Virus record (IMG/VR): IMGVR_UViG_3300042402_002641 | Span: 1 to 64,000 of that record | Length of the DNA stretch: 64,000 nucleotides | Reading direction: 5' to 3' (one strand) | Part shown: positions 12,520 through 62,993 of the stretch, piece after piece | How positions within the stretch are numbered: the first letter of the stretch is position 1 | Layout of the letters: each line of letters begins with the position of its first letter | The notes under the pieces: generated by a model | The model's database searches: none | The model's input: only the letters and a program-made list of their open reading frames with translations | Told to the model about the DNA's origin: nothing | Position numbers and translations under genes: made by a program

Positions 12520-14424
12520 TTAGTCTGCTTTCTTCTCTGTGAAGGTAGCATCAACTACATCATCTTGGTCGGGCATAGGTCCTGCTTCAGCTTGTGCTGT
12601 TGCCTGATCTTTAGCCTGCTTTTTTTCCAGCAATGTTTTCATTGCCGGGAAAACTTTATTAAGCTCTTCGGTGATCTTTTCAGTGTCATCGCCTTTGGCT
12701 GCTGTTTCAACTGCAGTGATCACTGTTTCAATTTCTGTGATTTCTGCTTCTGTGAGCTCTGCACGGAATTCTTCAAGATCTTTTTTAACTTCATGTACCT
12801 GCGCCTCTGCTGAATTTCTTGCATCAATCAATTCACGTGCTTTTTTATCTGCTTCTGCATTTAATTCGGCATCTTTGATCATGTCTTGAATTTCAGCTTC
12901 TGTTAGTCCGCTGTTAGATTTAATAGTGATCTTGTTTTCTTTGCCTGTGGCTTTGTCTTTGGCAGAGATATGCATGATACCGTTGGCATCAATGTCAAAG
13001 GTAACTTCAACCTGTGGCTGTCCTCTACGTGCAGGTGCAATGCCGTCAAGTTTGAATTCGCCCAATAGCTTGTTATATTGCACAAGCTCACGTTCCCCTT
13101 GGAATACTTTGATATCTACTGCGGGTTGATTGTCTTCTGCTGTGGAGAATGTCTGCTGTCCCTTGGTTGGGATAGTTGTATTCTTTTGAATGATCTTTGA
13201 CATCACGCCACCCATGGTTTCAATGCCCAAGGAGAGTGGAGTGACGTCTAACAACAGCACGTCATTACGATCGCCACCTAGCACAGCACCTTGAATAGCA
13301 GCACCAACTGCAACGGCTTCGTCTGGGTTGACATCTTTACGTGGTGCTTTACCAAACAGTTTTTCAACTTCTTCTTGCACCTTAGGCATGCGTGTTTGAC
13401 CACCAACAAGGATAACCTCGTCGATATCTGAGGCACTTACGCCTGCATCTTTGAGAGCAATACGGCATGGCTCTAATGAGCGTGTAATCAGTTCGGCAAC
13501 TAGTTGTTCTAGTTTGCTACGACTTAATTTTATCGCCAGATGTTTTGGACCGCTGGCATCTGCTGTGACATACGGAAGATTGACGTCTGTCTGAGCTGAG
13601 CTTGATAATTCAATCTTGGCTTTTTCAGCAGCATCTTTCAAACGTTGCAGAGCCAACATGTCTTTGCTGAGATCCACTCCTTGATCTTTCTTGAACTCAT
13701 CTACCAAGAAATCCATGATGCGTTGGTCAAAGTCTTCACCACCCAAGAATGTGTCACCGTTGGTGCTTAGTACTTCGATCTGCTTGTCGCCGTCAACGTT
13801 GGCTATCTCGATGATCGAAACATCGAATGTACCGCCACCAAGGTCGTAAACAGCAATTTTCCTATCTTTCTTATCAGCTTTATCAACACCATAAGCAAGA
13901 GCTGCCGCAGTAGGCTCGTTAATAATACGGAGTACCTCCAAGCCTGCGATCTGTCCAGCATCCTTAGTAGCTTGTCTTTGGCTGTCGTTAAAGTACGCAG
14001 GCACTGTAATAACTGCTTGTGTAACTGTTGTACCAAGATAATCCTCCGCGGTCTGTTTCATTTTGCGCAGAACTTCTGCTGAAATCTGCGGTGGTGCTAA
14101 TTCTTTACCCTGTGCTCTAACCCACGCATCACCATTAGAATTTTCATAGATCTCGTAGGGCATTAGATCGAGATCTTTTTGCACTGCCTGTTCTTTGAAC
14201 TTGCGACCAATCAATCGCTTGCTGGCATAGATTGTGTTTTTGGGATTTGTTACTGCCTGACGCTTGGCTGAAGCGCCAACGATGATTTCATCTTGTGTGT
14301 AGGCCACGATTGAGGGTGTAGTTCTTGCACCTTCTGAATTTTCAATAACTTTGGATTTTCCATTCTCGATAACAGCCACGCATGAGTTGGTGGTGCCGAG
14401 GTCAATACCGATGATCTTAGACAT
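12520..14424 (-). CDS. dnaK: chaperone DnaK (Hsp70)
   Basis: [27 protein letters not shown]; full length 634 aa. Confidence 0.98.
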
Positions 14425-15417: not shown

Positions 15418-15657
15418 TTAATAAAGTTTTGGTGGTAATTGTTGATCGCGGAGTTTTTTACGCCAACGTGCTTTGGCAGCACCTTTTTTGCGTTTGCGTT
15501 CAGTGGTTGGTTTTTCGTAAAATTCTTTCGTGCGTAGTGTATCCAGCATGCCAGATTCATCTACTTTCTTTTTGAATCTACGCAGAGCTTGATTTATGTT
15601 CTCATTTTCTTTGACAGTAACACTGTTGCCTTTGAGTGTATTGTAGATTTTAGCCAT
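15418..15657 (-). CDS. rpsU: ribosomal protein bS21
   Basis: VKENENINQALRRFKKKV..EFYEKPTTERKRKK; start at MAKIY. Confidence 0.93.
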   Translation of the reverse strand: MAKIYNTLKGNSVTVKENENINQALRRFKKKVDESGMLDTLRTKEFYEKPTTERKRKKGAAKARWRKKLRDQQLPPKLY

Positions 15658-54770: not shown

Positions 54771-55629
54771 TCTTTAGATACCTGCAGTATTCTTGAATGC
54801 CCTGCCAAGGCTCGTAGAACAAATCGGTGCGTACTTCTGCAAGTTCTAATGCTGAAATATCGGCCTTTGTTTCTAATTGATACTGTGCCTTGAGATCCTC
54901 AGGCATAACAATAGAACACTTTGTTCCAGCGCCGCATTCGTTGATCACAATGTTGGCAATGCTGTCAAAGTCCACGCTGGCGCCTGTACCTAGATCATAC
55001 ACACCGGGCTTATAGTTTTTCACAAAATGATGTATGGTACTGACAACATCTTCTACCCAAATAAAGTCTCTTCGATAGTTATTACTGTTTTCAAAGATGT
55101 TGATCTTGCGGTCTGTCTGTATTTGGTTATACCAATGCATTATAGTACTGGCCATACGACCTTTGTGATATTCGTTGGGACCGTAGACATTAAACAGTCT
55201 TAGTACTACTCCTGTGATTTCTTGTTCGCTGACCTGTTTGCTAAAAGCATACTGATTAAGTGGGCCGTTGCCATTACCATACACTGCTGCTGAACTGGTA
55301 AAGATAAAAGGTATTGTATGTTCTAGACAAAAGGCATTCCACATGCGAGTTGACAATACATTGGTCTTGTAGATAGATGGCCAATTGCGTTCCAACGTGC
55401 TGGAGTTGGCGCCTATGTGTATGACTGCTTGAATGTCTTTGGGATTGAATGTGGTCTTTTCAAATGTAGAGTGCGGATGAATGCTCCTGAACCGTTTGCC
55501 CACAAGATTACGATACTGTGTTTCGTTTAGCAAATCATCAAACAGTACTACATCAGAGATACCTTTCTTGTTTAGATAGCCCAACATCACGCTGCCAATG
55601 AAGCCGCCTGCTCCTGTTAGTATAATCAT
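54754..55629 (-). CDS. hldD: ADP-L-glycero-D-manno-heptose 6-epimerase
   Basis: [37 protein letters not shown]. Confidence 0.88.
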
Positions 55630-56387
55630 AGTATCTCTTCCATACTAGGAGCATAACAGCCAACGTGCTGAACTGTGATAGCAGCAGCTTGGTTGGCAAA
55701 GTCCATGGCTCTTTTTATATCTTTGGTATGTAGATAGTTGTAGACGAGAGCAGCAAGGAATGTATCTCCTGCGCCTGTAACATCTACAACTTCTACTTTT
55801 GGTACTTTAGAACTATACTCGTGGTGGACTGCATCCGCACCTTTGCTACCACGTGTAACAATCAATCCACTACATTCGCTTTTGATCTTGGTGTACTCTA
55901 ACTCGTTGATCTTTACCCATGCACCTTGCATACGTTCTAGATCTGTTTTCTTAGTATCAATAAAGATAGGAATACTCAGTGCTATCAGTTCTTCTATAAG
56001 TTCGTAGCTAACTGTTCCTTTATTGTAGTCACTGACCACAACAGCATCATACACATCAGGAATATCAGTTTCAAAGGTCAACGGATCAGATGCAACATCA
56101 TTGTCGATGCGCACAATCTGTTGTCGACTACGCTCATCAATCAATCTAGTCTTGGTACTGGTCTCACCAAACAGATAGTTTACTTCGCAGCCTAACGCTT
56201 CTAGATTATTGTAGACATTACCAGCCATACCATCACGTTCTTCTTTACGTGTAGGTACAAATACAGGAACAGGAGCCTCTGGACTCAAGCGATCAATTGT
56301 GCCGTATTGATAAATGTCTTTACAGTTATCACCGATTAGTAATATCCTGAATGGTTTTTGTTGTTGAGTAGGGTTCAATTCGATCAT
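55626..56387 (-). CDS. heptose-7-phosphate kinase (RfaE domain I, PfkB family)
   Basis: RLSPEAPVPV, SDYNKG, DVTGAGDTF. Confidence 0.9.
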   Translation of the reverse strand: MIELNPTQQQKPFRILLIGDNCKDIYQYGTIDRLSPEAPVPVFVPTRKEERDGMAGNVYNNLEALGCEVNYLFGETSTKTRLIDERSRQQIVRIDNDVASDPLTFETDIPDVYDAVVVSDYNKGTVSYELIEELIALSIPIFIDTKKTDLERMQGAWVKINELEYTKIKSECSGLIVTRGSKGADAVHHEYSSKVPKVEVVDVTGAGDTFLAALVYNYLHTKDIKRAMDFANQAAAITVQHVGCYAPSMEEIL

Positions 56388-56730
56388 AGTATATTACTTT
56401 ATTACAATATTGATGTGCTGTGGACTCTGTATCATGTTTCCAATCACTGCCTTTAACATAAACATCCGGCTTGTATCGTTCCATTAACTTAACTAGTTCT
56501 TCCTTGCTGTCAAAGAACTCCACAATATCTACAGCCTTAAGATTACTCAACATGATTCTGCGATCGTTCTGATTGTTAATAGGGCGGCTTTCGCCTTTGA
56601 GTTCCTTGACACGTCGGTCAGTGTCAATAGCTACAACGAGATGATCACCGTAACTGCGAGCTGTGTTTAACAAGGCAACGTGCCCTGGATGTAGCACATC
56701 AAACGTGCCATTAACCATTACTGTGGTCAT
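56329..56730 (-). CDS. heptose-1-phosphate nucleotidyltransferase (RfaE domain II)
   Basis: NGTFDVLHPGH, KGESRPIN, VKGSDW, STT. Confidence 0.9.
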   Translation of the reverse strand: MTTVMVNGTFDVLHPGHVALLNTARSYGDHLVVAIDTDRRVKELKGESRPINNQNDRRIMLSNLKAVDIVEFFDSKEELVKLMERYKPDVYVKGSDWKHDTESTAHQYCNKVIYYDRIEPYSTTKTIQDITNR

Positions 56731-57098
56731 TTTGATTGACTATCACCTGGTATAATTCTGTAGTTGTCCTCAACTGAGTCTGCTGTGCTGACTTCAAAGA
56801 TCATCGAGTTTGGTTTTAAGGCCACAAGCTGATGTGGCAGCATTGGAGGATTATGCCATGTGTCACCTTCTTGAAGTATCTTTTCGTGATAGGTTGCTGT
56901 CTTGGTATCACACCAAACTAATTTAAATTGGCCTGCATTTACAAACCAGGTTTCGTCTTTTTCTTTGTGAAGATGCATACTAAATTTTGCACCGACCTTT
57001 TCAAATACCATAATCTTACCACAGTATCTGTCATTGGTAGCCCAAATGATTTCATAGCCCCAACCTTTCGCCACTCGTCCGTCTAGTCTTTGTTGCAT
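56727..57098 (-). CDS. cupin-fold sugar isomerase-like protein
   Basis: KGWGYE, SMHLHKEKDETW, PH, EVST. Confidence 0.85.
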   Translation of the reverse strand: MQQRLDGRVAKGWGYEIIWATNDRYCGKIMVFEKVGAKFSMHLHKEKDETWFVNAGQFKLVWCDTKTATYHEKILQEGDTWHNPPMLPHQLVALKPNSMIFEVSTADSVEDNYRIIPGDSQSK

Positions 57099-57110
57099 AT
57101 ATAAATCACC

Positions 57111-57497
57111 TTACATCTGTGTTGCAGCCGTTGCCTGTGTATCACCGGGTGCCAGCCTGAATCGATCTTCTACATAGTCTGCAGTTCCTACCTCAAAGAT
57201 GATTGAGTTAGCCACCAATGCTTCTATTTGGTGAGGACCTAGAGCTGCAAAATCCACAGTCTTGCCTTCTTCTAGCTCAGCATGTTTGGTTTCACCTGTG
57301 GCAATGTCTATAAAAGTAAGTTTAAAACGACCAGCATTAATAAACCAACTCTTAGATTTATCTTTGTGAAACACTAGACTGGTTTTAGCACCAACCCGTT
57401 CAAACACAAGCAGTTTGCCACAGTACTTGTCGCAATTAGCAAATATTATTTCAAATCCCCAACCCTTGTCTATTTTTCCTGGTGTCTGTAGGTTCAT
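57111..57497 (-). CDS. cupin paralog with degenerate metal site
   Basis: KGWGFE, SLVFHKDKSKSW (first His and Glu lost). Confidence 0.8.
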   Translation of the reverse strand: MNLQTPGKIDKGWGFEIIFANCDKYCGKLLVFERVGAKTSLVFHKDKSKSWFINAGRFKLTFIDIATGETKHAELEEGKTVDFAALGPHQIEALVANSIIFEVGTADYVEDRFRLAPGDTQATAATQM

Positions 57498-57590
57498 CTT
57501 TATCTCCGTATCATGTATTATATACAAAAAATCATTGTGTTGTCAATGATCTGAGTGTATAATCAGTTAAATACGTGAAACAATTTCATC

Positions 57591-58106
57591 ATGCACACAC
57601 TATTATTAAACGCAGACATGCAGCCCGTGAGCCTATTACCGTTGTCAACAGTGGATTGGCAGGAGGCCGTACGATATATGGTTTTGGACAAATGCACCGT
57701 GCTGGAATGGTACGACGACTGGATCGTCCGCTCTGCTCGCTGGGAAACTCGGGTGCCTGCAGTCTTGATGCTGAAAGAGTATCAGCGTCCAAAACATACC
57801 ATGCGTCTCAGCAAGCGTAACATATTTCTACGTGACTCATTCACTTGCCAATACTGTGACATCTCTGTCACCGAAGCCACTGCCACACTAGACCATGTGC
57901 TGCCTGTGAGCAAGGGTGGTAAGACCACTTGGGAAAATTCAACCACTGCCTGCAGAAGCTGTAACTATCGCAAGGCCGCACATGTGGGCAAGATGAAACC
58001 AAAACTCACTCCCTATAAGCCACACTTTTGGGATCTAGTTGCCAAACGTCGACAGCGTGGCTATCACATGAGTCATCCTAGTTGGTCTAACTATCTGAAC
58101 ATGTGA
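57591..58106 (+). CDS. HNH endonuclease
   Basis: RD..CQYC, TLDHVLP..GG..WEN..AC..CN. Confidence 0.93.
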   Translation: MHTLLLNADMQPVSLLPLSTVDWQEAVRYMVLDKCTVLEWYDDWIVRSARWETRVPAVLMLKEYQRPKHTMRLSKRNIFLRDSFTCQYCDISVTEATATLDHVLPVSKGGKTTWENSTTACRSCNYRKAAHVGKMKPKLTPYKPHFWDLVAKRRQRGYHMSHPSWSNYLNM

Positions 58107-58154: not shown

Positions 58155-58282
58155 ACATTGATTAGAGGAGAACTAGTATGATGCTATCAAGGGCTCAGCG
58201 CCAACTCAAACGACAGATTTTTAATAATCTGTTTAGCATACAAAAAACATTGCGAACATTGATTAGAAGGAGAACTAGTATG
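58155..58282 (+). repeat. direct repeat of RBS plus start codon
   Basis: ACATTGATTAGA(A)GGAGAACTAGTATG at 58155-58180 and 58256-58282. Confidence 0.9.
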
Positions 58283-59332
58283 CCGCAACTATTAACAGCT
58301 ACTATAACGGCTGCAGAATTTAAACAACTATTTGGATTTGATGAACCTAGCGGTCTGTTTAACGATCCGAAATTTAGATTGGTGATAAACAAGTTTGGTA
58401 GATGTTACTGGCTTCTAGCCTGTGATAATCTACAGGGTCCACGATTCAGTGGAGTGAATGTTTACTATCAAGGTAACAACAGTAGGTTGATTCGTACTAT
58501 CTATCCTGCAGCGAAACGCATAATTGATGTAGGATCTAATGTGGGTAACAACACCATTGCCTACGGAGAATGGGCCGAGAACGTCGAGTCTTTTGAACCC
58601 ACTCCCACCACGTTGACTATGCTGAAAGCAAACATAGCCATTGCTGAACAAAGCAATCTACAAGGAATATATTGGCAGGGAGATCAAAATCGTGGTGCTT
58701 TGCACAGAGACCCTACGCCCGTTGTGGGATGGTACACCTGGAAAGGTGTCGCACAGAGCATGAACATACGAGCCAATATCACAGTTCATGAAGTTGCGCT
58801 GTCCAATTCAAACACAGGCAACATTGATATTTTAGATCATACCGACCACGGCGGGCATAATCATGTGGTTATAGATTCTACAGATCTTAAACTAAGGCCA
58901 AGCCAACAATTGGTCAAGGTCCCTGTAAGGACCATAGACAGCTACAATTTTGAATCTGTTGACGCCATTAAAATTGATGTAGAAGGATCTGAACTGTTGG
59001 TAATCCAAGGAGCCAAAGACACCATAGACCGCTGTCGCCCTAGTGTGCAGGTTGAGATAGTGCCCAAACAGTGCAGATTGTTTGGTTATGATCCACAGGC
59101 CTTGTATGATTTCTTTGCTGAAAGAGACTATGTATGTGTCAGTGCTGTGCGCAAACCTGCGAACAAAGAACAAGAAGGTCTGTTCTTTGGTGCAAATATT
59201 GGCATGACTCATCAACAGATTCCAAAATACATGGATCGGTTGTTTGTGCCTAGAGAAGTGCATGAGCGTACAGACTATGGTGCTATGGCCCAAAGTCAAA
59301 ATGAGTTTAATACACTGTTTGATTTTGGTTAA
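58178..59332 (+). CDS. FkbM-family methyltransferase
   Basis: IDVGSNVG, SFEP, IKIDVEGSE. Confidence 0.88.
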   Translation: MMLSRAQRQLKRQIFNNLFSIQKTLRTLIRRRTSMPQLLTATITAAEFKQLFGFDEPSGLFNDPKFRLVINKFGRCYWLLACDNLQGPRFSGVNVYYQGNNSRLIRTIYPAAKRIIDVGSNVGNNTIAYGEWAENVESFEPTPTTLTMLKANIAIAEQSNLQGIYWQGDQNRGALHRDPTPVVGWYTWKGVAQSMNIRANITVHEVALSNSNTGNIDILDHTDHGGHNHVVIDSTDLKLRPSQQLVKVPVRTIDSYNFESVDAIKIDVEGSELLVIQGAKDTIDRCRPSVQVEIVPKQCRLFGYDPQALYDFFAERDYVCVSAVRKPANKEQEGLFFGANIGMTHQQIPKYMDRLFVPREVHERTDYGAMAQSQNEFNTLFDFG

Positions 59333-59340
59333 TTAAATGA

Positions 59341-59369
59341 TTGACATCTGACCCTAGCTGTATTATACT
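59341..59369 (+). promoter_or_regulatory. sigma70 promoter embedded in an inverted repeat
   Basis: TTGACA-N17-TATACT; accctagctgta/tatagctagggt arms. Confidence 0.75.
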
Positions 59370-59409
59370 ATAGCTAGGGTTTATTTTTAAGGCAACGAAA
59401 GGCAATCAA

Positions 59410-60786
59410 ATGGCAACAACAAACACATTCAATCCTGTAGAGAAAGAACATCACTTCCGTAGTTTTGGTACTTGGTTAAGTGATGTAACTAAAGTTATTC
59501 CTACAGACAAATCAACTATCAAACGTCGACTACAAGATTTCAGCGAAGCAGAACTTGATGCGCATATGGATAAGCACAAGGTTCTAGCTGAATTACCAAT
59601 CAACAAAGAAAACGAAAATCTTCAGCGTGTAGTTGAAGAAGTTCTCACACACTACAAATCAACAGGAGTCCTTGACGGAATAATGTTACCGTTCGAGGAA
59701 CGTAAGAGTCGATTGAAGGGCGTAGAAAAACTCCCCATCCGAGACATTTGGTTGAACTACGGTGAAGACGGACAAGGGGGACAACGTAATCCTAAACCCC
59801 GTCACATTCTACAAATGCTGCGTCGATGGGACGTAGATGGTCTCACCTGTGGTAATGCTCGATTGGATCCTACAGATAATCGAGTGTTTGTTAATGAGGG
59901 GCAACAACGTAGTATTGCAGGATGTATCGTAAGTCGAACAGAATTCGCATATGAAGTATTACCTAGCTCAGACGACATTGACGACCTTCGTCAGTTCAAA
60001 CGTGAGAATCAAGGCAAGCTTCGTGCTACTGAAGTAGAACTTGCACTCAGTGATGCATTGGTTGTTAAGAAAAGTCTTGAAGATTATTGTATTAAAAAGA
60101 AAATTGACATCACTGAAATCAGTTACGCAGAAGTTTGCAAACAGATGCAACTCAGCAAAAGTGATGACGAGTTTGTTAACTTTAAGATTTTCAATGAGCT
60201 CAGTCTAAAGAGAAACTTCCGTATGGTCAATGACGAGAACAAGGAAGAAAAGAATCTCAAAGGAGCTTGTTCTAATATCAGTCAGCTTAAAGCAATCTTC
60301 GAAACTACAGCATACAGCGATGATGTTCTAACTCTTGCTCTTGATTGGTATGAATACATTTGGCCGCTGAAGCGATTAGAGACTGCCGACCTGATCGGGT
60401 TAGTTGAAACAATTTATTTTAACAAGGATTGGATCTTTGAAAAAGATTTTGACAAAGACCTGTTCCAGGTTAAATTAATGAATGCTCTGCGCGAACAATG
60501 GCCTAACAAGACCAGTGGCAAGGGTTCTACTCCTGCTTGGCGTCAGATACAAGATGAGATGAGTGAACAGTTTCCTTATAAGACCAAGGAAGACAAAGAA
60601 AAGAATGTTAAGTTTTATTCTGTAGATTCTACACGTATTGCAAAACACATGTGGATCGCTCAAGGGTTCTACTCTGTTCTTAGTCAGCGTCTGCCCAAAG
60701 AATATGCAACACAATTGGTGCAGCCTTATTCCGTTGAAACCAAAATGGTATTTCCATTAACGATGCCTGTGATTAAAAATGCTTAA
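59410..60786 (+). CDS. ParB/DUF262(DGQxR)-like protein
   Basis: GGQRNP, FVNEGQQRS, FKRENQG motifs. Confidence 0.6.
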   Translation: MATTNTFNPVEKEHHFRSFGTWLSDVTKVIPTDKSTIKRRLQDFSEAELDAHMDKHKVLAELPINKENENLQRVVEEVLTHYKSTGVLDGIMLPFEERKSRLKGVEKLPIRDIWLNYGEDGQGGQRNPKPRHILQMLRRWDVDGLTCGNARLDPTDNRVFVNEGQQRSIAGCIVSRTEFAYEVLPSSDDIDDLRQFKRENQGKLRATEVELALSDALVVKKSLEDYCIKKKIDITEISYAEVCKQMQLSKSDDEFVNFKIFNELSLKRNFRMVNDENKEEKNLKGACSNISQLKAIFETTAYSDDVLTLALDWYEYIWPLKRLETADLIGLVETIYFNKDWIFEKDFDKDLFQVKLMNALREQWPNKTSGKGSTPAWRQIQDEMSEQFPYKTKEDKEKNVKFYSVDSTRIAKHMWIAQGFYSVLSQRLPKEYATQLVQPYSVETKMVFPLTMPVIKNA

Positions 60787-61273
60787 ACACACAGAGTTAA
60801 TCAATAGATTGATTCAACAGCGCCAGCTTCAAACTGGTGCTGTGTTTGATCGAAAGACCTATTGGTGTGCAGCCAGTTACAGAAAGGTTGCAGAAACCAG
60901 TGACCTACGCTATGATTATGCTTATTCTATTATGAAGAAATGGTCAGGGGGCTCTCCTGAACAATGGGTTGAAAAAATGCCGGTGAGCTTTAGAGGACAT
61001 CTGTTAGATTACGGTCGAGGTGCTAACAAAATGATTAATCAATTTAGAGATCTTGATCCAGAGATCGTCTATGAATATGATTACTTTCATACTGTTAACG
61101 CTGACCACATAAAGCCAAAAAGTTATGGCGGAGAATGGACATTTGATAACTGCATCATTCGTCCAAAAGTAGCAAATATCATACGTCAAAACTTCAATGA
61201 CGAAACCCTGAAAGAAGCCCTGCTGATTACTGCAGATAGTTATAATATTTCTCTTGACAATCCAACTGTTTGA
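60779..61273 (+). CDS. HNH nuclease-domain protein
   Basis: ADHIKPKSYGGEWTFDNC..AN; 8-bp overlap with upstream gene. Confidence 0.7.
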   Translation: MLKHTELINRLIQQRQLQTGAVFDRKTYWCAASYRKVAETSDLRYDYAYSIMKKWSGGSPEQWVEKMPVSFRGHLLDYGRGANKMINQFRDLDPEIVYEYDYFHTVNADHIKPKSYGGEWTFDNCIIRPKVANIIRQNFNDETLKEALLITADSYNISLDNPTV

Positions 61274-61305: not shown

Positions 61306-61665
61306 GTGATTGTGCGTTATATTTTGGCATCGTGGGATCGAGAAGGGTTTGAATGTCTGCAAGACATTACTAACAAACATCCAGACTCTTGGGACAAAGG
61401 ACAACTCATAGAAGCTCTTCGAGGCCATACACCACAGAGGAATCCGTTAGCTGAACAGATCGGAGCAATGAAACTTCGTGCTCGTTACAACAGTCAACGC
61501 TGTTATGAAATCTATGTGTTTACCACACAAGATGACATTGAATTTAAAGATGTAGAGGATTGGATGATCGCCGATCCTCAGAGTTTGGTAGACTGGGTGC
61601 GTGTTAATCACTATGCCCAAGTCTACTCAGACTATGAACCCAATCGTAAATCTGTAATCGTTTAA
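61306..61665 (+). CDS. hypothetical phage protein
   Basis: WDREGFE..LRARYNSQRCYEIY. Confidence 0.7.
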   Translation: MIVRYILASWDREGFECLQDITNKHPDSWDKGQLIEALRGHTPQRNPLAEQIGAMKLRARYNSQRCYEIYVFTTQDDIEFKDVEDWMIADPQSLVDWVRVNHYAQVYSDYEPNRKSVIV

Positions 61666-61673
61666 GGACTAAA

Positions 61674-62993
61674 ATGCGTACACAACCAGAAACAATCATC
61701 CAGCGTCTTGAAGCAGATAACTCACGACTGGCCAAAGAGCAGATCCTAGCAGAAGCAATGTCAGAAGGTCTGGATGAGTTTTTTGAAGGAGTTAAGATGG
61801 GCTTAGACAAGCTCTACACATTTGGCATCAAACAGGTTCCCGTCAGTGAACAAGATGGGCAAGGACTTTCTTGGACCAACTTTGTGGAATTGGCCGAAGC
61901 TCTGTATCGCAGAGAACTCACTGGCCATGCCGCACGTGATGCAGTCAAACTGGCCATGGATGTGGCCACTAAGTCGCAGTGGAATGATTGGTATCGTAGG
62001 ATTCTGATCAAAGACATGCGAGCTGGATTCGGTGAAAAGTCAGTGAACTCTGTGGCCAAGAAAGCCAAGAAGCCCGAATACGCTGTGCCTGTGTTTGAAG
62101 TCATGTTGGCACATGATGGTGCTAATCATGAAGGCAAGATCACAGGAAAAAAATTGGTAGAACCCAAGCTAGACGGAGTTCGTGTGGTCACTGTGGTTGA
62201 CTTTGAAAGCCGCACAGTTGTGATGTATACCCGCAACGGCAAAGAACTTGTGAACTTTCCGCATATTGTTAAGGCATTTGAAGACAACCTAGATAACTTT
62301 GCTCGTAGCTATGTTTTCGACGGTGAAGTGGTATCTACATCGTTCCAGGCCTTGATGAAAGAAGTACATCGCAAAGAAAATGCGCAGGCACAGGATGCCC
62401 GACTGATGCTGTTTGATGTGATCCCTTTGTCGGAGTTCAAACTGGGTGAGAGTGCTATGGGGCAACGGCGGCGCAGTGCATTCTTGCGTGAAAACTTTTC
62501 CAAGATATTTGCAGACTCAGGCTGCATCGACATCATCGCACAACGTGAATTTGATCTAGATGTGTTCACTGATGAGATCGAGTTCCGTGACTACAACAAG
62601 CAGATGGTCACAGAGGGCTTTGAGGGTATCATGATCAAAGATCCCAACGGCAAATGGGAAGGCAAACGCAGCGTGGCCTGGCTCAAACAAAAGCCCTTTA
62701 TTGAAGTCAGCCTTGAAATCACAGCAGTAGAAGAAGGCACAGGCCGGAATGAGGGCAGGCTAGGTGCTGTAATCTGTGCAGGGCGAGATGATGGCAAAGA
62801 CATTCGAGTTAATGTGGGTTCGGGTTTCACAGATAGCGATCGAAAGGAATACTGGGAAGCTCGAGACAGCCTTCCGGGTCAGGTCATAGAAGTACGTGCA
62901 GATGCTGTGACACAGAATCAAGACGGCACCTACAGCCTACGCTTTCCACGCTTTATGCGATTCCGTGGATTCAAGACCGGTGAAAAGATCTAA
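61674..62993 (+). CDS. ATP-dependent DNA ligase
   Basis: KLDGVR, FDGE, FD, EGIMIK, KQK, GSGF, LRFPRF. Confidence 0.95.
   Translation: MRTQPETIIQRLEADNSRLAKEQILAEAMSEGLDEFFEGVKMGLDKLYTFGIKQVPVSEQDGQGLSWTNFVELAEALYRRELTGHAARDAVKLAMDVATKSQWNDWYRRILIKDMRAGFGEKSVNSVAKKAKKPEYAVPVFEVMLAHDGANHEGKITGKKLVEPKLDGVRVVTVVDFESRTVVMYTRNGKELVNFPHIVKAFEDNLDNFARSYVFDGEVVSTSFQALMKEVHRKENAQAQDARLMLFDVIPLSEFKLGESAMGQRRRSAFLRENFSKIFADSGCIDIIAQREFDLDVFTDEIEFRDYNKQMVTEGFEGIMIKDPNGKWEGKRSVAWLKQKPFIEVSLEITAVEEGTGRNEGRLGAVICAGRDDGKDIRVNVGSGFTDSDRKEYWEARDSLPGQVIEVRADAVTQNQDGTYSLRFPRFMRFRGFKTGEKI

Follow-up and report, generated by a model that had tools for sequence, protein, structure and literature searches.

Enzymes that combine a ParB-fold NTPase with an HNH nuclease are known mainly from bacteria, where they act against phages (GmrSD, BrxU and SspE). 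The published signatures of this group are QR, (I/V)DGQQR and FxxxN for GmrS and (E/D)-H-N-N for GmrD (PMC4619093), and the split GmrS plus GmrD of the E. coli CT596 prophage serves here as the comparator. Phage ParB-fold proteins with the domain DUF6551 (PF20188) have in turn been reported to bind CTP or ATP (PMC12704722). In the present study we describe the same plan in a separate lineage, as two adjacent open reading frames (ORFs), A (59410–60786) and B (60779–61273), of IMG/VR virus record IMGVR_UViG_3300042402_002641. The window analysed is the first 64 kb of this 280-kb record, the genome of which was rated 79% complete. The same stretch was recovered from lake-water metagenomes of many studies, and its source is a large, apparently lytic jumbo phage of freshwater lakes. 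Within a three-part locus, the pair forms the variable cassette, lying between a conserved FkbM methyltransferase gene and a DNA ligase gene; all genes lie on the plus strand, in the order methyltransferase, A, B, a 119-aa ORF and ligase. It seems to us somewhat more probable than otherwise that A and B together make up a phage-specific, two-subunit DNA endonuclease, GmrSD/BrxU-like in its split build and with a role in conflict.

A preliminary description of this DNA, made from the letters alone, had placed two ORFs and a set of named motifs here. Both the ORFs and the motifs were found at these places, and they proved to be conserved in 24 homologues of A and 16 of B. ORF A (458 aa, plus strand) comprises an N-terminal helical region (residues 1–100), a ParB/sulfiredoxin (Srx)-fold domain (103–204), helix-turn-helix (HTH)-like helices (approx. 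205–270) and a helical C-terminal domain. The ParB/Srx-fold domain (59716–60021, plus strand) is a putative NTP-binding domain, carrying the motifs QR, R151, NEGQQR and FKRENQGKL. According to the translation, Q125-R126 is encoded at 59782–59787, R151 at 59860–59862, E163–R167 (EGQQR) at 59896–59910 (NEGQQR at 59893–59910), while F196-KRE-N200-Q-G202 (F-x-x-x-N-x-G) starts at 59995, with FKRENQGKL spanning 59995–60021. Residues Q125, R126, R151, N162-E-G-Q-Q-R167, E199, N200, K203 and L204 are invariant in the 24 A homologues (38–90% identity), as is the F196...N200 pair in the 24 sequences of the A family. Taken together with the DH-N-N residues of B, the QR, EGQQR and FxxxN motifs match the published GmrS and GmrD signatures, including the D-to-E change noted in the preliminary description (PMC4619093).

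The suggestion that A is ParB-like was borne out by fold searches, which revealed a ParB/Srx fold. The AlphaFold model of A, based on the family alignment, reached a pLDDT (predicted local distance difference test) of 87, and in a Foldseek comparison with the Protein Data Bank (PDB) ranks 1–37 were occupied exclusively by ParB, Noc, KorB, PadC or sulfiredoxin structures. Viral ParB/Sulfiredoxin proteins were matched in BFVD (1.6e-7), and clusters named ParB/Sulfiredoxin and DUF6551 in the Atlas (TM, template modelling, scores of 0.44–0.61). All Atlas neighbours with taxonomy were viral, and one feature (language-model) neighbour was a viral cluster with PF03235 (GmrSD_N) in 51% of its members. 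Uncharacterised proteins of approx. 390–400 aa from T4-like cyanophages (ACG-2014j, S-PRM1, Syn1, S-RIM2, S-CAM22, S-IOM18) also share the overall fold of A (BFVD E values of 4e-5 to 4e-2); the A4 profile found nothing in the genome of Prochlorococcus phage Syn1.

At the sequence level, the three-dimensional ParB N-terminal fold of A is not accompanied by a match to ParB_N (PF02195). Pfam searches with the 24 A members were negative at E ≤ 10 (PF03235, PF02195 and PF20188 included), and six-frame searches of the genome with GmrSD_N (PF03235, E ≤ 10) and ParB_N (PF02195) detected nothing. The preliminary description had likened the pair to the DUF262/DUF1524 (GmrSD) group, and membership of this group was not supported, as PF03235, DUF1524 and TIGR03187 all missed. 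PF03235 gave no match to A at E ≤ 1, NCBIfam, with the TIGR03187 DGQHR model in the library, yielded only two chance matches to A at E ≤ 1, and A produced no hidden Markov model (HMM) match to the DGQHR/DndB family (TIGR03187, PF14072). PADLOC yielded no model matching A, nor any matching nine variant proteins. A tblastn search with A and two related proteins (P0064, P0066) against 50,697 phage records, and a megablast search with the region, gave A no name. The family profiles, compared with PDB sequences, produced a marginal SbnI match and chance matches to G-alpha; G-alpha identity was rejected, since the E values were 0.004–0.5, the aligned part was a helical stretch and the fold searches gave no support. 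When the full set of 1.84 billion representatives was searched by HMM, only 33 A-related proteins were retrieved. On the basis of its modelled fold, A is thus best regarded as a ParB/Srx-fold protein of the DGQHR-motif branch, placed outside every curated family.

ORF B (164 aa, plus strand) consists of a family-specific helical N-terminal domain (approximately the first 100 residues) and a C-terminal, predicted beta-beta-alpha-metal HNH core (residues 104–137; 61088–61189, plus strand). The translated motif DHIKP starts at D109-H110 (61103–61108) and is followed by N124 (61148–61150) and N133 (61175–61177); all four residues are invariant in the 16 B homologues. The only Pfam matches of B at E ≤ 1 were HNH_5 (0.012) and HNH (0.034), both below threshold, and DUF1524 was not listed; the bit scores (14.7 and 15.9) did not reach the gathering cut-offs (21.4 and 27.5) of the HNH endonuclease models PF01844 and PF14279. 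The corresponding small ORF of a sister locus (L008) scored 22.0 bits against the HNH cut-off of 21.4. In PHROGs, B matched phrog_1035 (endonuclease VII) at 2.7e-4. The structure model of B (pLDDT 91) gave weak fold matches, yet all of them were HNH proteins (ColE7/E9, Gme HNH, Cas9 HNH, McrA, PacI), and the pattern LDYGxGxN...(D/E/Q)H...N...N is kept by the small ORFs of 12/12 type representatives. B is therefore HNH-like, as the preliminary description had proposed, judging from motif conservation and these weak matches.

The two genes are tightly linked. The ATG of B lies within the last codons of A (ATGCTTAA), and this 8-nt start/stop overlap fits translational coupling. The order methyltransferase-A-B was present in all five metagenome contexts (39–58% identity of A) and in all 11 IMG/VR loci found through A. 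Two remote A-like proteins of approx. 400 aa (P0063, P0064) are each directly followed by a B-like ORF (hhalign 96–98%), and in one locus (L007) this arrangement is found without a methyltransferase gene upstream. A further remote relative, P0076 (475 aa), is a natural fusion with a Pfam HNH match of 2.8e-8 (34.2 bits at the C-terminus). Residues 55–186 of this protein, bearing the motifs FQRPPMPDH and ADGQHH, align with the ParB domain of A (residues 102–226, 96%), and residues 344–458 align with residues 20–142 of B (88%), its own N-terminal domain included. P0076 also gave sub-threshold matches to DUF6551 (1e-4; 22.2 bits vs 26.8) and TIGR03187 (DGQHR; 6e-4; 19.6 bits vs 58.85).

Complex formation between A and B was predicted with an ipSAE of 0.71 (median of three runs), compared with 0.33 for the best control; contact agreement between runs was at least 97% and the pLDDT of the partner at least 87. 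The ipSAE mark applied was reached by 58/80 solved complexes and 2/110 mismatched pairs, counts that are only rough, because our own alignments were used. The predicted interface joins residues 362–386 and 453–457 of A (C-terminal helices and tail) with residues 16–41 of B (N-terminal helices). In the model, it is located where fission of a fused ancestor would leave the contacting parts, which is also the junction of the two halves in a natural fusion protein. The preliminary description would have been contradicted by an HNH gene unlinked to A in homologous loci. We found the two linked in every locus examined, fused in P0076 and predicted to bind each other.

A search of IMG/VR with the methyltransferase yielded 39 loci, 37 of which had enough downstream DNA for analysis. 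In each of the 37 the methyltransferase gene was followed by an ORF of 436–563 aa and then by an overlapping or abutting ORF of 153–206 aa. These pairs fall into at least 10 types, which share only 16–55% identity with one another, some being recognisable by profile only, and the types of the large and small ORFs match when clustered. The distribution of the types does not follow that of the flanking genes. One locus with flanks very close to those of the window (L051; ligase 94%, methyltransferase 81%) carries a different type (A and B 21% and 20% identical), and L021 and L022 carry two further types, while three loci with more divergent flanks (L036, L037, L055; ligase 73%, methyltransferase 72%) contain the window's type at 98% (A) and 92% (B) identity. 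In comparisons with L011 and L015, nucleotide identity is approx. 70% in the flanks and 90–100% exactly across A and B. Judging from these sequences, the cassette type does not track its flanks, and cassettes have been swapped between phage lineages. In the alignment of the whole superfamily Q125, R126 and R151 are invariant, N162, G175 and N200 are nearly so, and the common form of the central motif is NDGQHR.

Two peculiarities of other types deserve mention. In most of them (L021–L058) the large protein ends in a strongly acidic tail (D/E runs; A4 columns approx. 760–820), which has no counterpart in the window's type and may be a protein- or DNA-mimic interaction tail. In L030 and L031, the small ORFs cluster with the L024 type at ≥60% identity and the large ORFs are separate (approx. 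55% identical), which hints at uneven divergence or at exchange within the pair.

The borders of the cassette coincide with promoters. The 77-nt spacer between the methyltransferase gene and A holds a sigma-70-type promoter, P1 (59341–59369, plus strand; TTGACA-17-TATACT, 11/12 consensus), which serves the A-B pair and forms the left border; the claim that the pair has its own promoter was thus upheld. P1 is overlapped by a 13-bp hairpin with a T-run (59350–59381, plus strand), terminator-like for the upstream methyltransferase gene. The right border is marked by P2 (61254–61282, plus strand), a perfect sigma-70-type promoter (TTGACA-17-TATAAT with TG), at which no stem-loop was detected. When phages with other cassette types are compared, nucleotide homology is lost at 59332–59418 and regained at 61245–61254, i.e. 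at P1 and P2. Read by eye, a TTGACA-like -35 and a TATAAT-like -10 were present at the position equivalent to P1 in 16/16 spacers of different cassette types. The composite of P1 and hairpin resembles the PeSL (promoter early stem-loop) promoter-terminator elements which shuffle genes in the hyperplastic regions of T4-type phages (PMC2839356, PMC4122927), and we infer a role of the promoter-bearing spacers in recombination.

The window contains eight TTGACA-17-TATAMT sites (12022, 15386, 18723, 20343, 27362, 47406, 59341 and 61254), all co-oriented with the local genes, compared with 1.14 expected; none of 100 shuffles reached eight. This consensus suggests that the main sigma factor of the host reads E. 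coli-type promoters, which would be unlike the Bacteroidetes hosts proposed for lake phages encoding ribosomal protein bS21. Metatranscriptome contigs matched the A/B junction (60708–60920) and B (60827–61014) without any differences, and also touched the methyltransferase gene and the 119-aa ORF; they are a weak sign of A/B expression.

The left flank of the cassette is formed by the FkbM-family S-adenosylmethionine (SAM) methyltransferase gene (58178–59332, plus strand; Pfam PF05050 3e-17, TIGR01444 3e-19). Its product is 69–81% identical across the 39 IMG/VR loci, regardless of the cassette type located downstream, and its profile detected no solved relative at E ≤ 0.01. The right flank is formed by the conserved ATP-dependent DNA ligase gene (61674–62993, plus strand; PF01068 2e-22, phrog_114 4e-88), with 73–94% identity across related loci. 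Between cassette and ligase, behind P2, lies the 119-aa ORF (61306–61665, plus strand), a second variable element without a Pfam match. It is present at 39–41% identity in L051 and L022 and missing from L015 and L023, in which the ligase gene directly follows B.

Several other genes of this phage and its relatives were noted. Just upstream of the methyltransferase gene lies a free-standing HNH endonuclease gene (57591–58106, plus strand; PF14279 1e-14, phrog_16726 3e-28). Its homologue in L014 is located approx. 4 kb downstream of the cassette, and this HNH gene therefore appears to be independently mobile. Further upstream, a divergent cluster (55626–57527, minus strand) resembles nucleotide-sugar (heptose-type) synthesis genes, as read from motifs only. 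Among its products, a PfkB-like kinase shows a GAGD motif and a small cytidylyltransferase-like protein the motif GTFDVLHPGH, while two others are cupin-like. Outside the window, a 237-aa open frame contains a second, partial match to the FkbM domain (1.4e-11; genome positions 106257–106385, minus strand). In relatives (the P0026 contig and locus L002), the methyltransferase-A-B trio is found amid nucleotide-metabolism genes (SAM synthetase, PTPS/QueD, MazG, NT5C, Rv2179c-like exonuclease and clamp loader), and the proximity of a phage SAM synthetase may be relevant to methyltransferase function. The window also encodes a full-length DnaK/Hsp70-like chaperone (634 aa; 12523–14424, minus strand; phrog_22485 8e-276), approx. 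66% identical to the products of DnaK genes in records filed as proteobacterial phages or genomes, and ribosomal protein bS21 (15466–15624, minus strand; PF01165, 4.4e-19). In L004 a bS21 gene is immediately upstream of the methyltransferase gene, and in bS21-bearing lake phages an FkbM-domain methyltransferase gene has been found among the most transcribed phage genes (PMC9723584).

If A and B indeed constitute a two-subunit endonuclease, the pair would be expressed early, from a host-type sigma-70 promoter; having its own conserved promoter of this kind, it is probably an early gene pair. A would bind DNA through its ParB-like and HTH-like parts and, in the window's clade, might bind or hydrolyse NTP via QR, R151, NEGQQR and EN..KL. 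It would gate or position B, the N-terminal helices of which would dock on the C-terminal helices and tail of A, and B would cut DNA with its D-H...N...N site. The likeliest roles would be the exclusion of co-infecting phages or an attack on host or foreign DNA. Since the pair is hypervariable, co-varies as a unit, has a promoter-bearing spacer on either side and is exchanged among lineages, it is more readily seen as an accessory conflict module than as core replication machinery.

Several observations weigh against this interpretation. The last arginine of the DGQHR motif is replaced in several sister types (NDGNHGT, NDGQHGS, NEGRHGA), and gating by NTP therefore cannot be general. R167, invariant in the window's clade, gives way to G, A or H in P0076 and several sister types, so that the phosphate-binding GxxR (Box II) arginine is not a general property of the cassette superfamily. 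Phage ParB-like activators have been reported to remain functional when their NTP-binding residues are mutated (PMC13229309). The constant and highly conserved methyltransferase neighbour could point to a modification role instead. No self-protection mechanism was found, and genes of base hypermodification (ThyA-like, TGT/DpdA and QueD/PTPS) were absent from the 79%-complete genome of this phage. Scans of A with Pfam, PHROGs, PADLOC and NCBIfam placed it in no curated family or defence model. The metatranscriptome contigs are short, DNA carry-over is possible, and neither transcript start nor strand can be resolved from them. Finally, the activity of the pair (NTP binding, nuclease, target and timing) is inferred throughout.

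Other explanations of the same locus have to be weighed. It is rather unlikely, in our opinion, that A-B is a selfish homing or marker-exclusion cassette, which would cut co-infecting relatives of another type, either at the corresponding locus or in a conserved gene close to it, and be copied in by repair, like the seg/mob endonucleases of T-even phages but with two subunits. Such a cassette would account for an HNH nuclease with its own promoter between conserved genes, for the sharply bounded, 93%-identical cassette within roughly 70%-identical flanks, and for the many alternative types at one site, distributed incongruently with the flanks. However, homing genes are typically sporadic, and here the large-plus-small pair occupied 37/37 loci with no empty sites; the catalytic residues are intact in every type, decaying copies were not seen, and the exchange is explicable by recombination at the promoter-bearing spacers. 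Moreover, a 458-aa ParB-fold partner is not known from homing enzymes. Homing with a co-conversion tract was considered separately and rejected, as the rise in identity over the 3'-terminal 300 nt of that encoding the methyltransferase was also observed against phages with other types. The FkbM enzymes are known as O-methyltransferases of small molecules and sugars, which argues against A and B being their accessory factors in the modification of DNA or another polymer. We hold this explanation, in which A would be a ParB-like loader or activator (as are DndB, DpdB and the ParB protein activating phage thymine dioxygenases) and B would bind the substrate DNA or nick it, to be improbable. It would agree with the constant methyltransferase-A-B order (37/37 loci), with ParB-fold fusions to methyltransferases, reported to be common in phages (PMC12704722), and with the documented ParB-like activator of a phage DNA-modifying enzyme (T-dioxygenases; PMC13229309). 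On the other hand, the methyltransferase gene is set apart from A by a terminator-like hairpin and a distinct promoter, and remote A-B pairs occur without a methyltransferase gene (L007). A fixed partner would also be expected to co-vary, whereas the methyltransferase is 69–81% identical and A-B, falling to 16–20%, is swapped independently of it.

We regard it as quite improbable that the pair is a true GmrSD-type, modification-dependent (Type IV) restriction enzyme directed against competitors with hypermodified DNA. The set and order of motifs are those of GmrS and GmrD (PMC4619093), the ParB-like and HNH parts follow each other from N- to C-terminus whether split or fused, the viral Atlas cluster rich in PF03235 is a feature neighbour of A, and hypervariability would be in keeping with an arms race against inhibitors. 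Nevertheless, A, B and nine variants were missed by PF03235, DUF1524, TIGR03187 and the PADLOC models of GmrSD, BrxU and SspE. Hardly credible, in turn, is the view that A is a plain ParB-like DNA binder (a partition, nucleoid or transcription factor) and B an unrelated, free-standing HNH neighbour. Although the closest solved folds are those of chromosome and plasmid ParB, Noc and KorB, and HTH-like helices follow the ParB domain, the arrangement of the two genes, strictly adjacent and with start/stop overlap in at least 10 types, the matching clusters of large and small types, the natural fusion P0076 and the predicted A-B binding all speak against such independence; in addition, PF02195 is unmatched and hypervariability would be unexpected of a partition protein.

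The two-subunit endonuclease reading can be extended, in a form that we advance only tentatively. The locus may serve freshwater jumbo phages as a diversifying weapon slot, in which an undescribed class of two-subunit nucleases, with a ParB-type, NTP-gated clamp or sensor loading on DNA and delivering an HNH subunit, would exclude relatives or destroy host DNA, its at least 10 types being swapped via promoter-bearing spacers. If this is true, phages use a GmrSD-like principle offensively, in a family that escapes current defence-finder models; the pair goes unrecognised in Pfam, NCBIfam, PHROGs and PADLOC alike. A fixed slot with many mobile types is a pattern that marks genes under conflict-driven selection. 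The pair also offers a tractable two-protein system for the study of a ParB-type switch controlling a nuclease, of the use of such enzymes by large lytic phages, and of spacer-driven cassette exchange outside T4-type phages.

Among described systems, the canonical ParB, Noc and KorB CTPases resemble A in their motifs, which correspond to Box I (QR..P.P), Box II (G-x-x-R) and Box III (E-N-x-x-K/R-L), and in the HTH-like helices following the ParB domain. A differs from them in lacking a PF02195 match, in its C-terminal domain and in having a nuclease partner, and neither a parS nor a ParA context was seen beside the locus, no genome-wide search for them having been made. The DUF6551 proteins are similar in whole-protein fold (Atlas TM of 0.44–0.55 by query and 0.65–0.73 by target) and in their viral distribution. 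In contrast to them, A has no PF20188 match at E ≤ 10, and neither an HNH partner nor the behaviour of a hypervariable cassette is described for DUF6551 proteins in PMC12704722. With regard to genetic organisation, PeSL-bordered regions are similar in that the variable genes of the cassette are bounded by conserved, early-type sigma-70 promoters, that a stem-loop accompanies the left promoter, and that replacement events begin and finish in the spacers; the differences are the right border, which has no detected stem-loop, and the phage itself, which has a genome of 280 kb with genes for bS21 and DnaK, comes from a lake and belongs to another group than the T4-type phages.

At the HMM level, A and B match neither DUF262 nor DUF1524 nor any PADLOC model, which sets them apart from the GmrSD, BrxU and SspE enzymes. 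With respect to GmrSD, the window's clade has E in place of D (EGQQR), the wider family being mostly NDGQHR, the ParB domain of A is structurally nearer to CTP-binding ParB, and the pair resides in large phages as an early-promoter cassette and not in bacterial defence islands. The likeness to all three enzymes lies in a ParB/Srx-fold part with QR, (D/E)GQ(Q/H)R and FxxxN in that order, with a helical region and then an (E/D)-H-N-N nuclease behind it, in the occurrence of both split and fused forms, in the co-evolution of the parts and in their carriage on mobile elements. Of the GmrSD-like interpretation put forward in the preliminary description, the split ParB-fold/HNH build stood, while membership of DUF262/DUF1524 or of any curated defence family was not supported. 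The pair is best described as a phage-specific variant of the split, GmrSD-type ParB-fold/HNH kind, residing in a hypervariable and exchangeable early-gene cassette.

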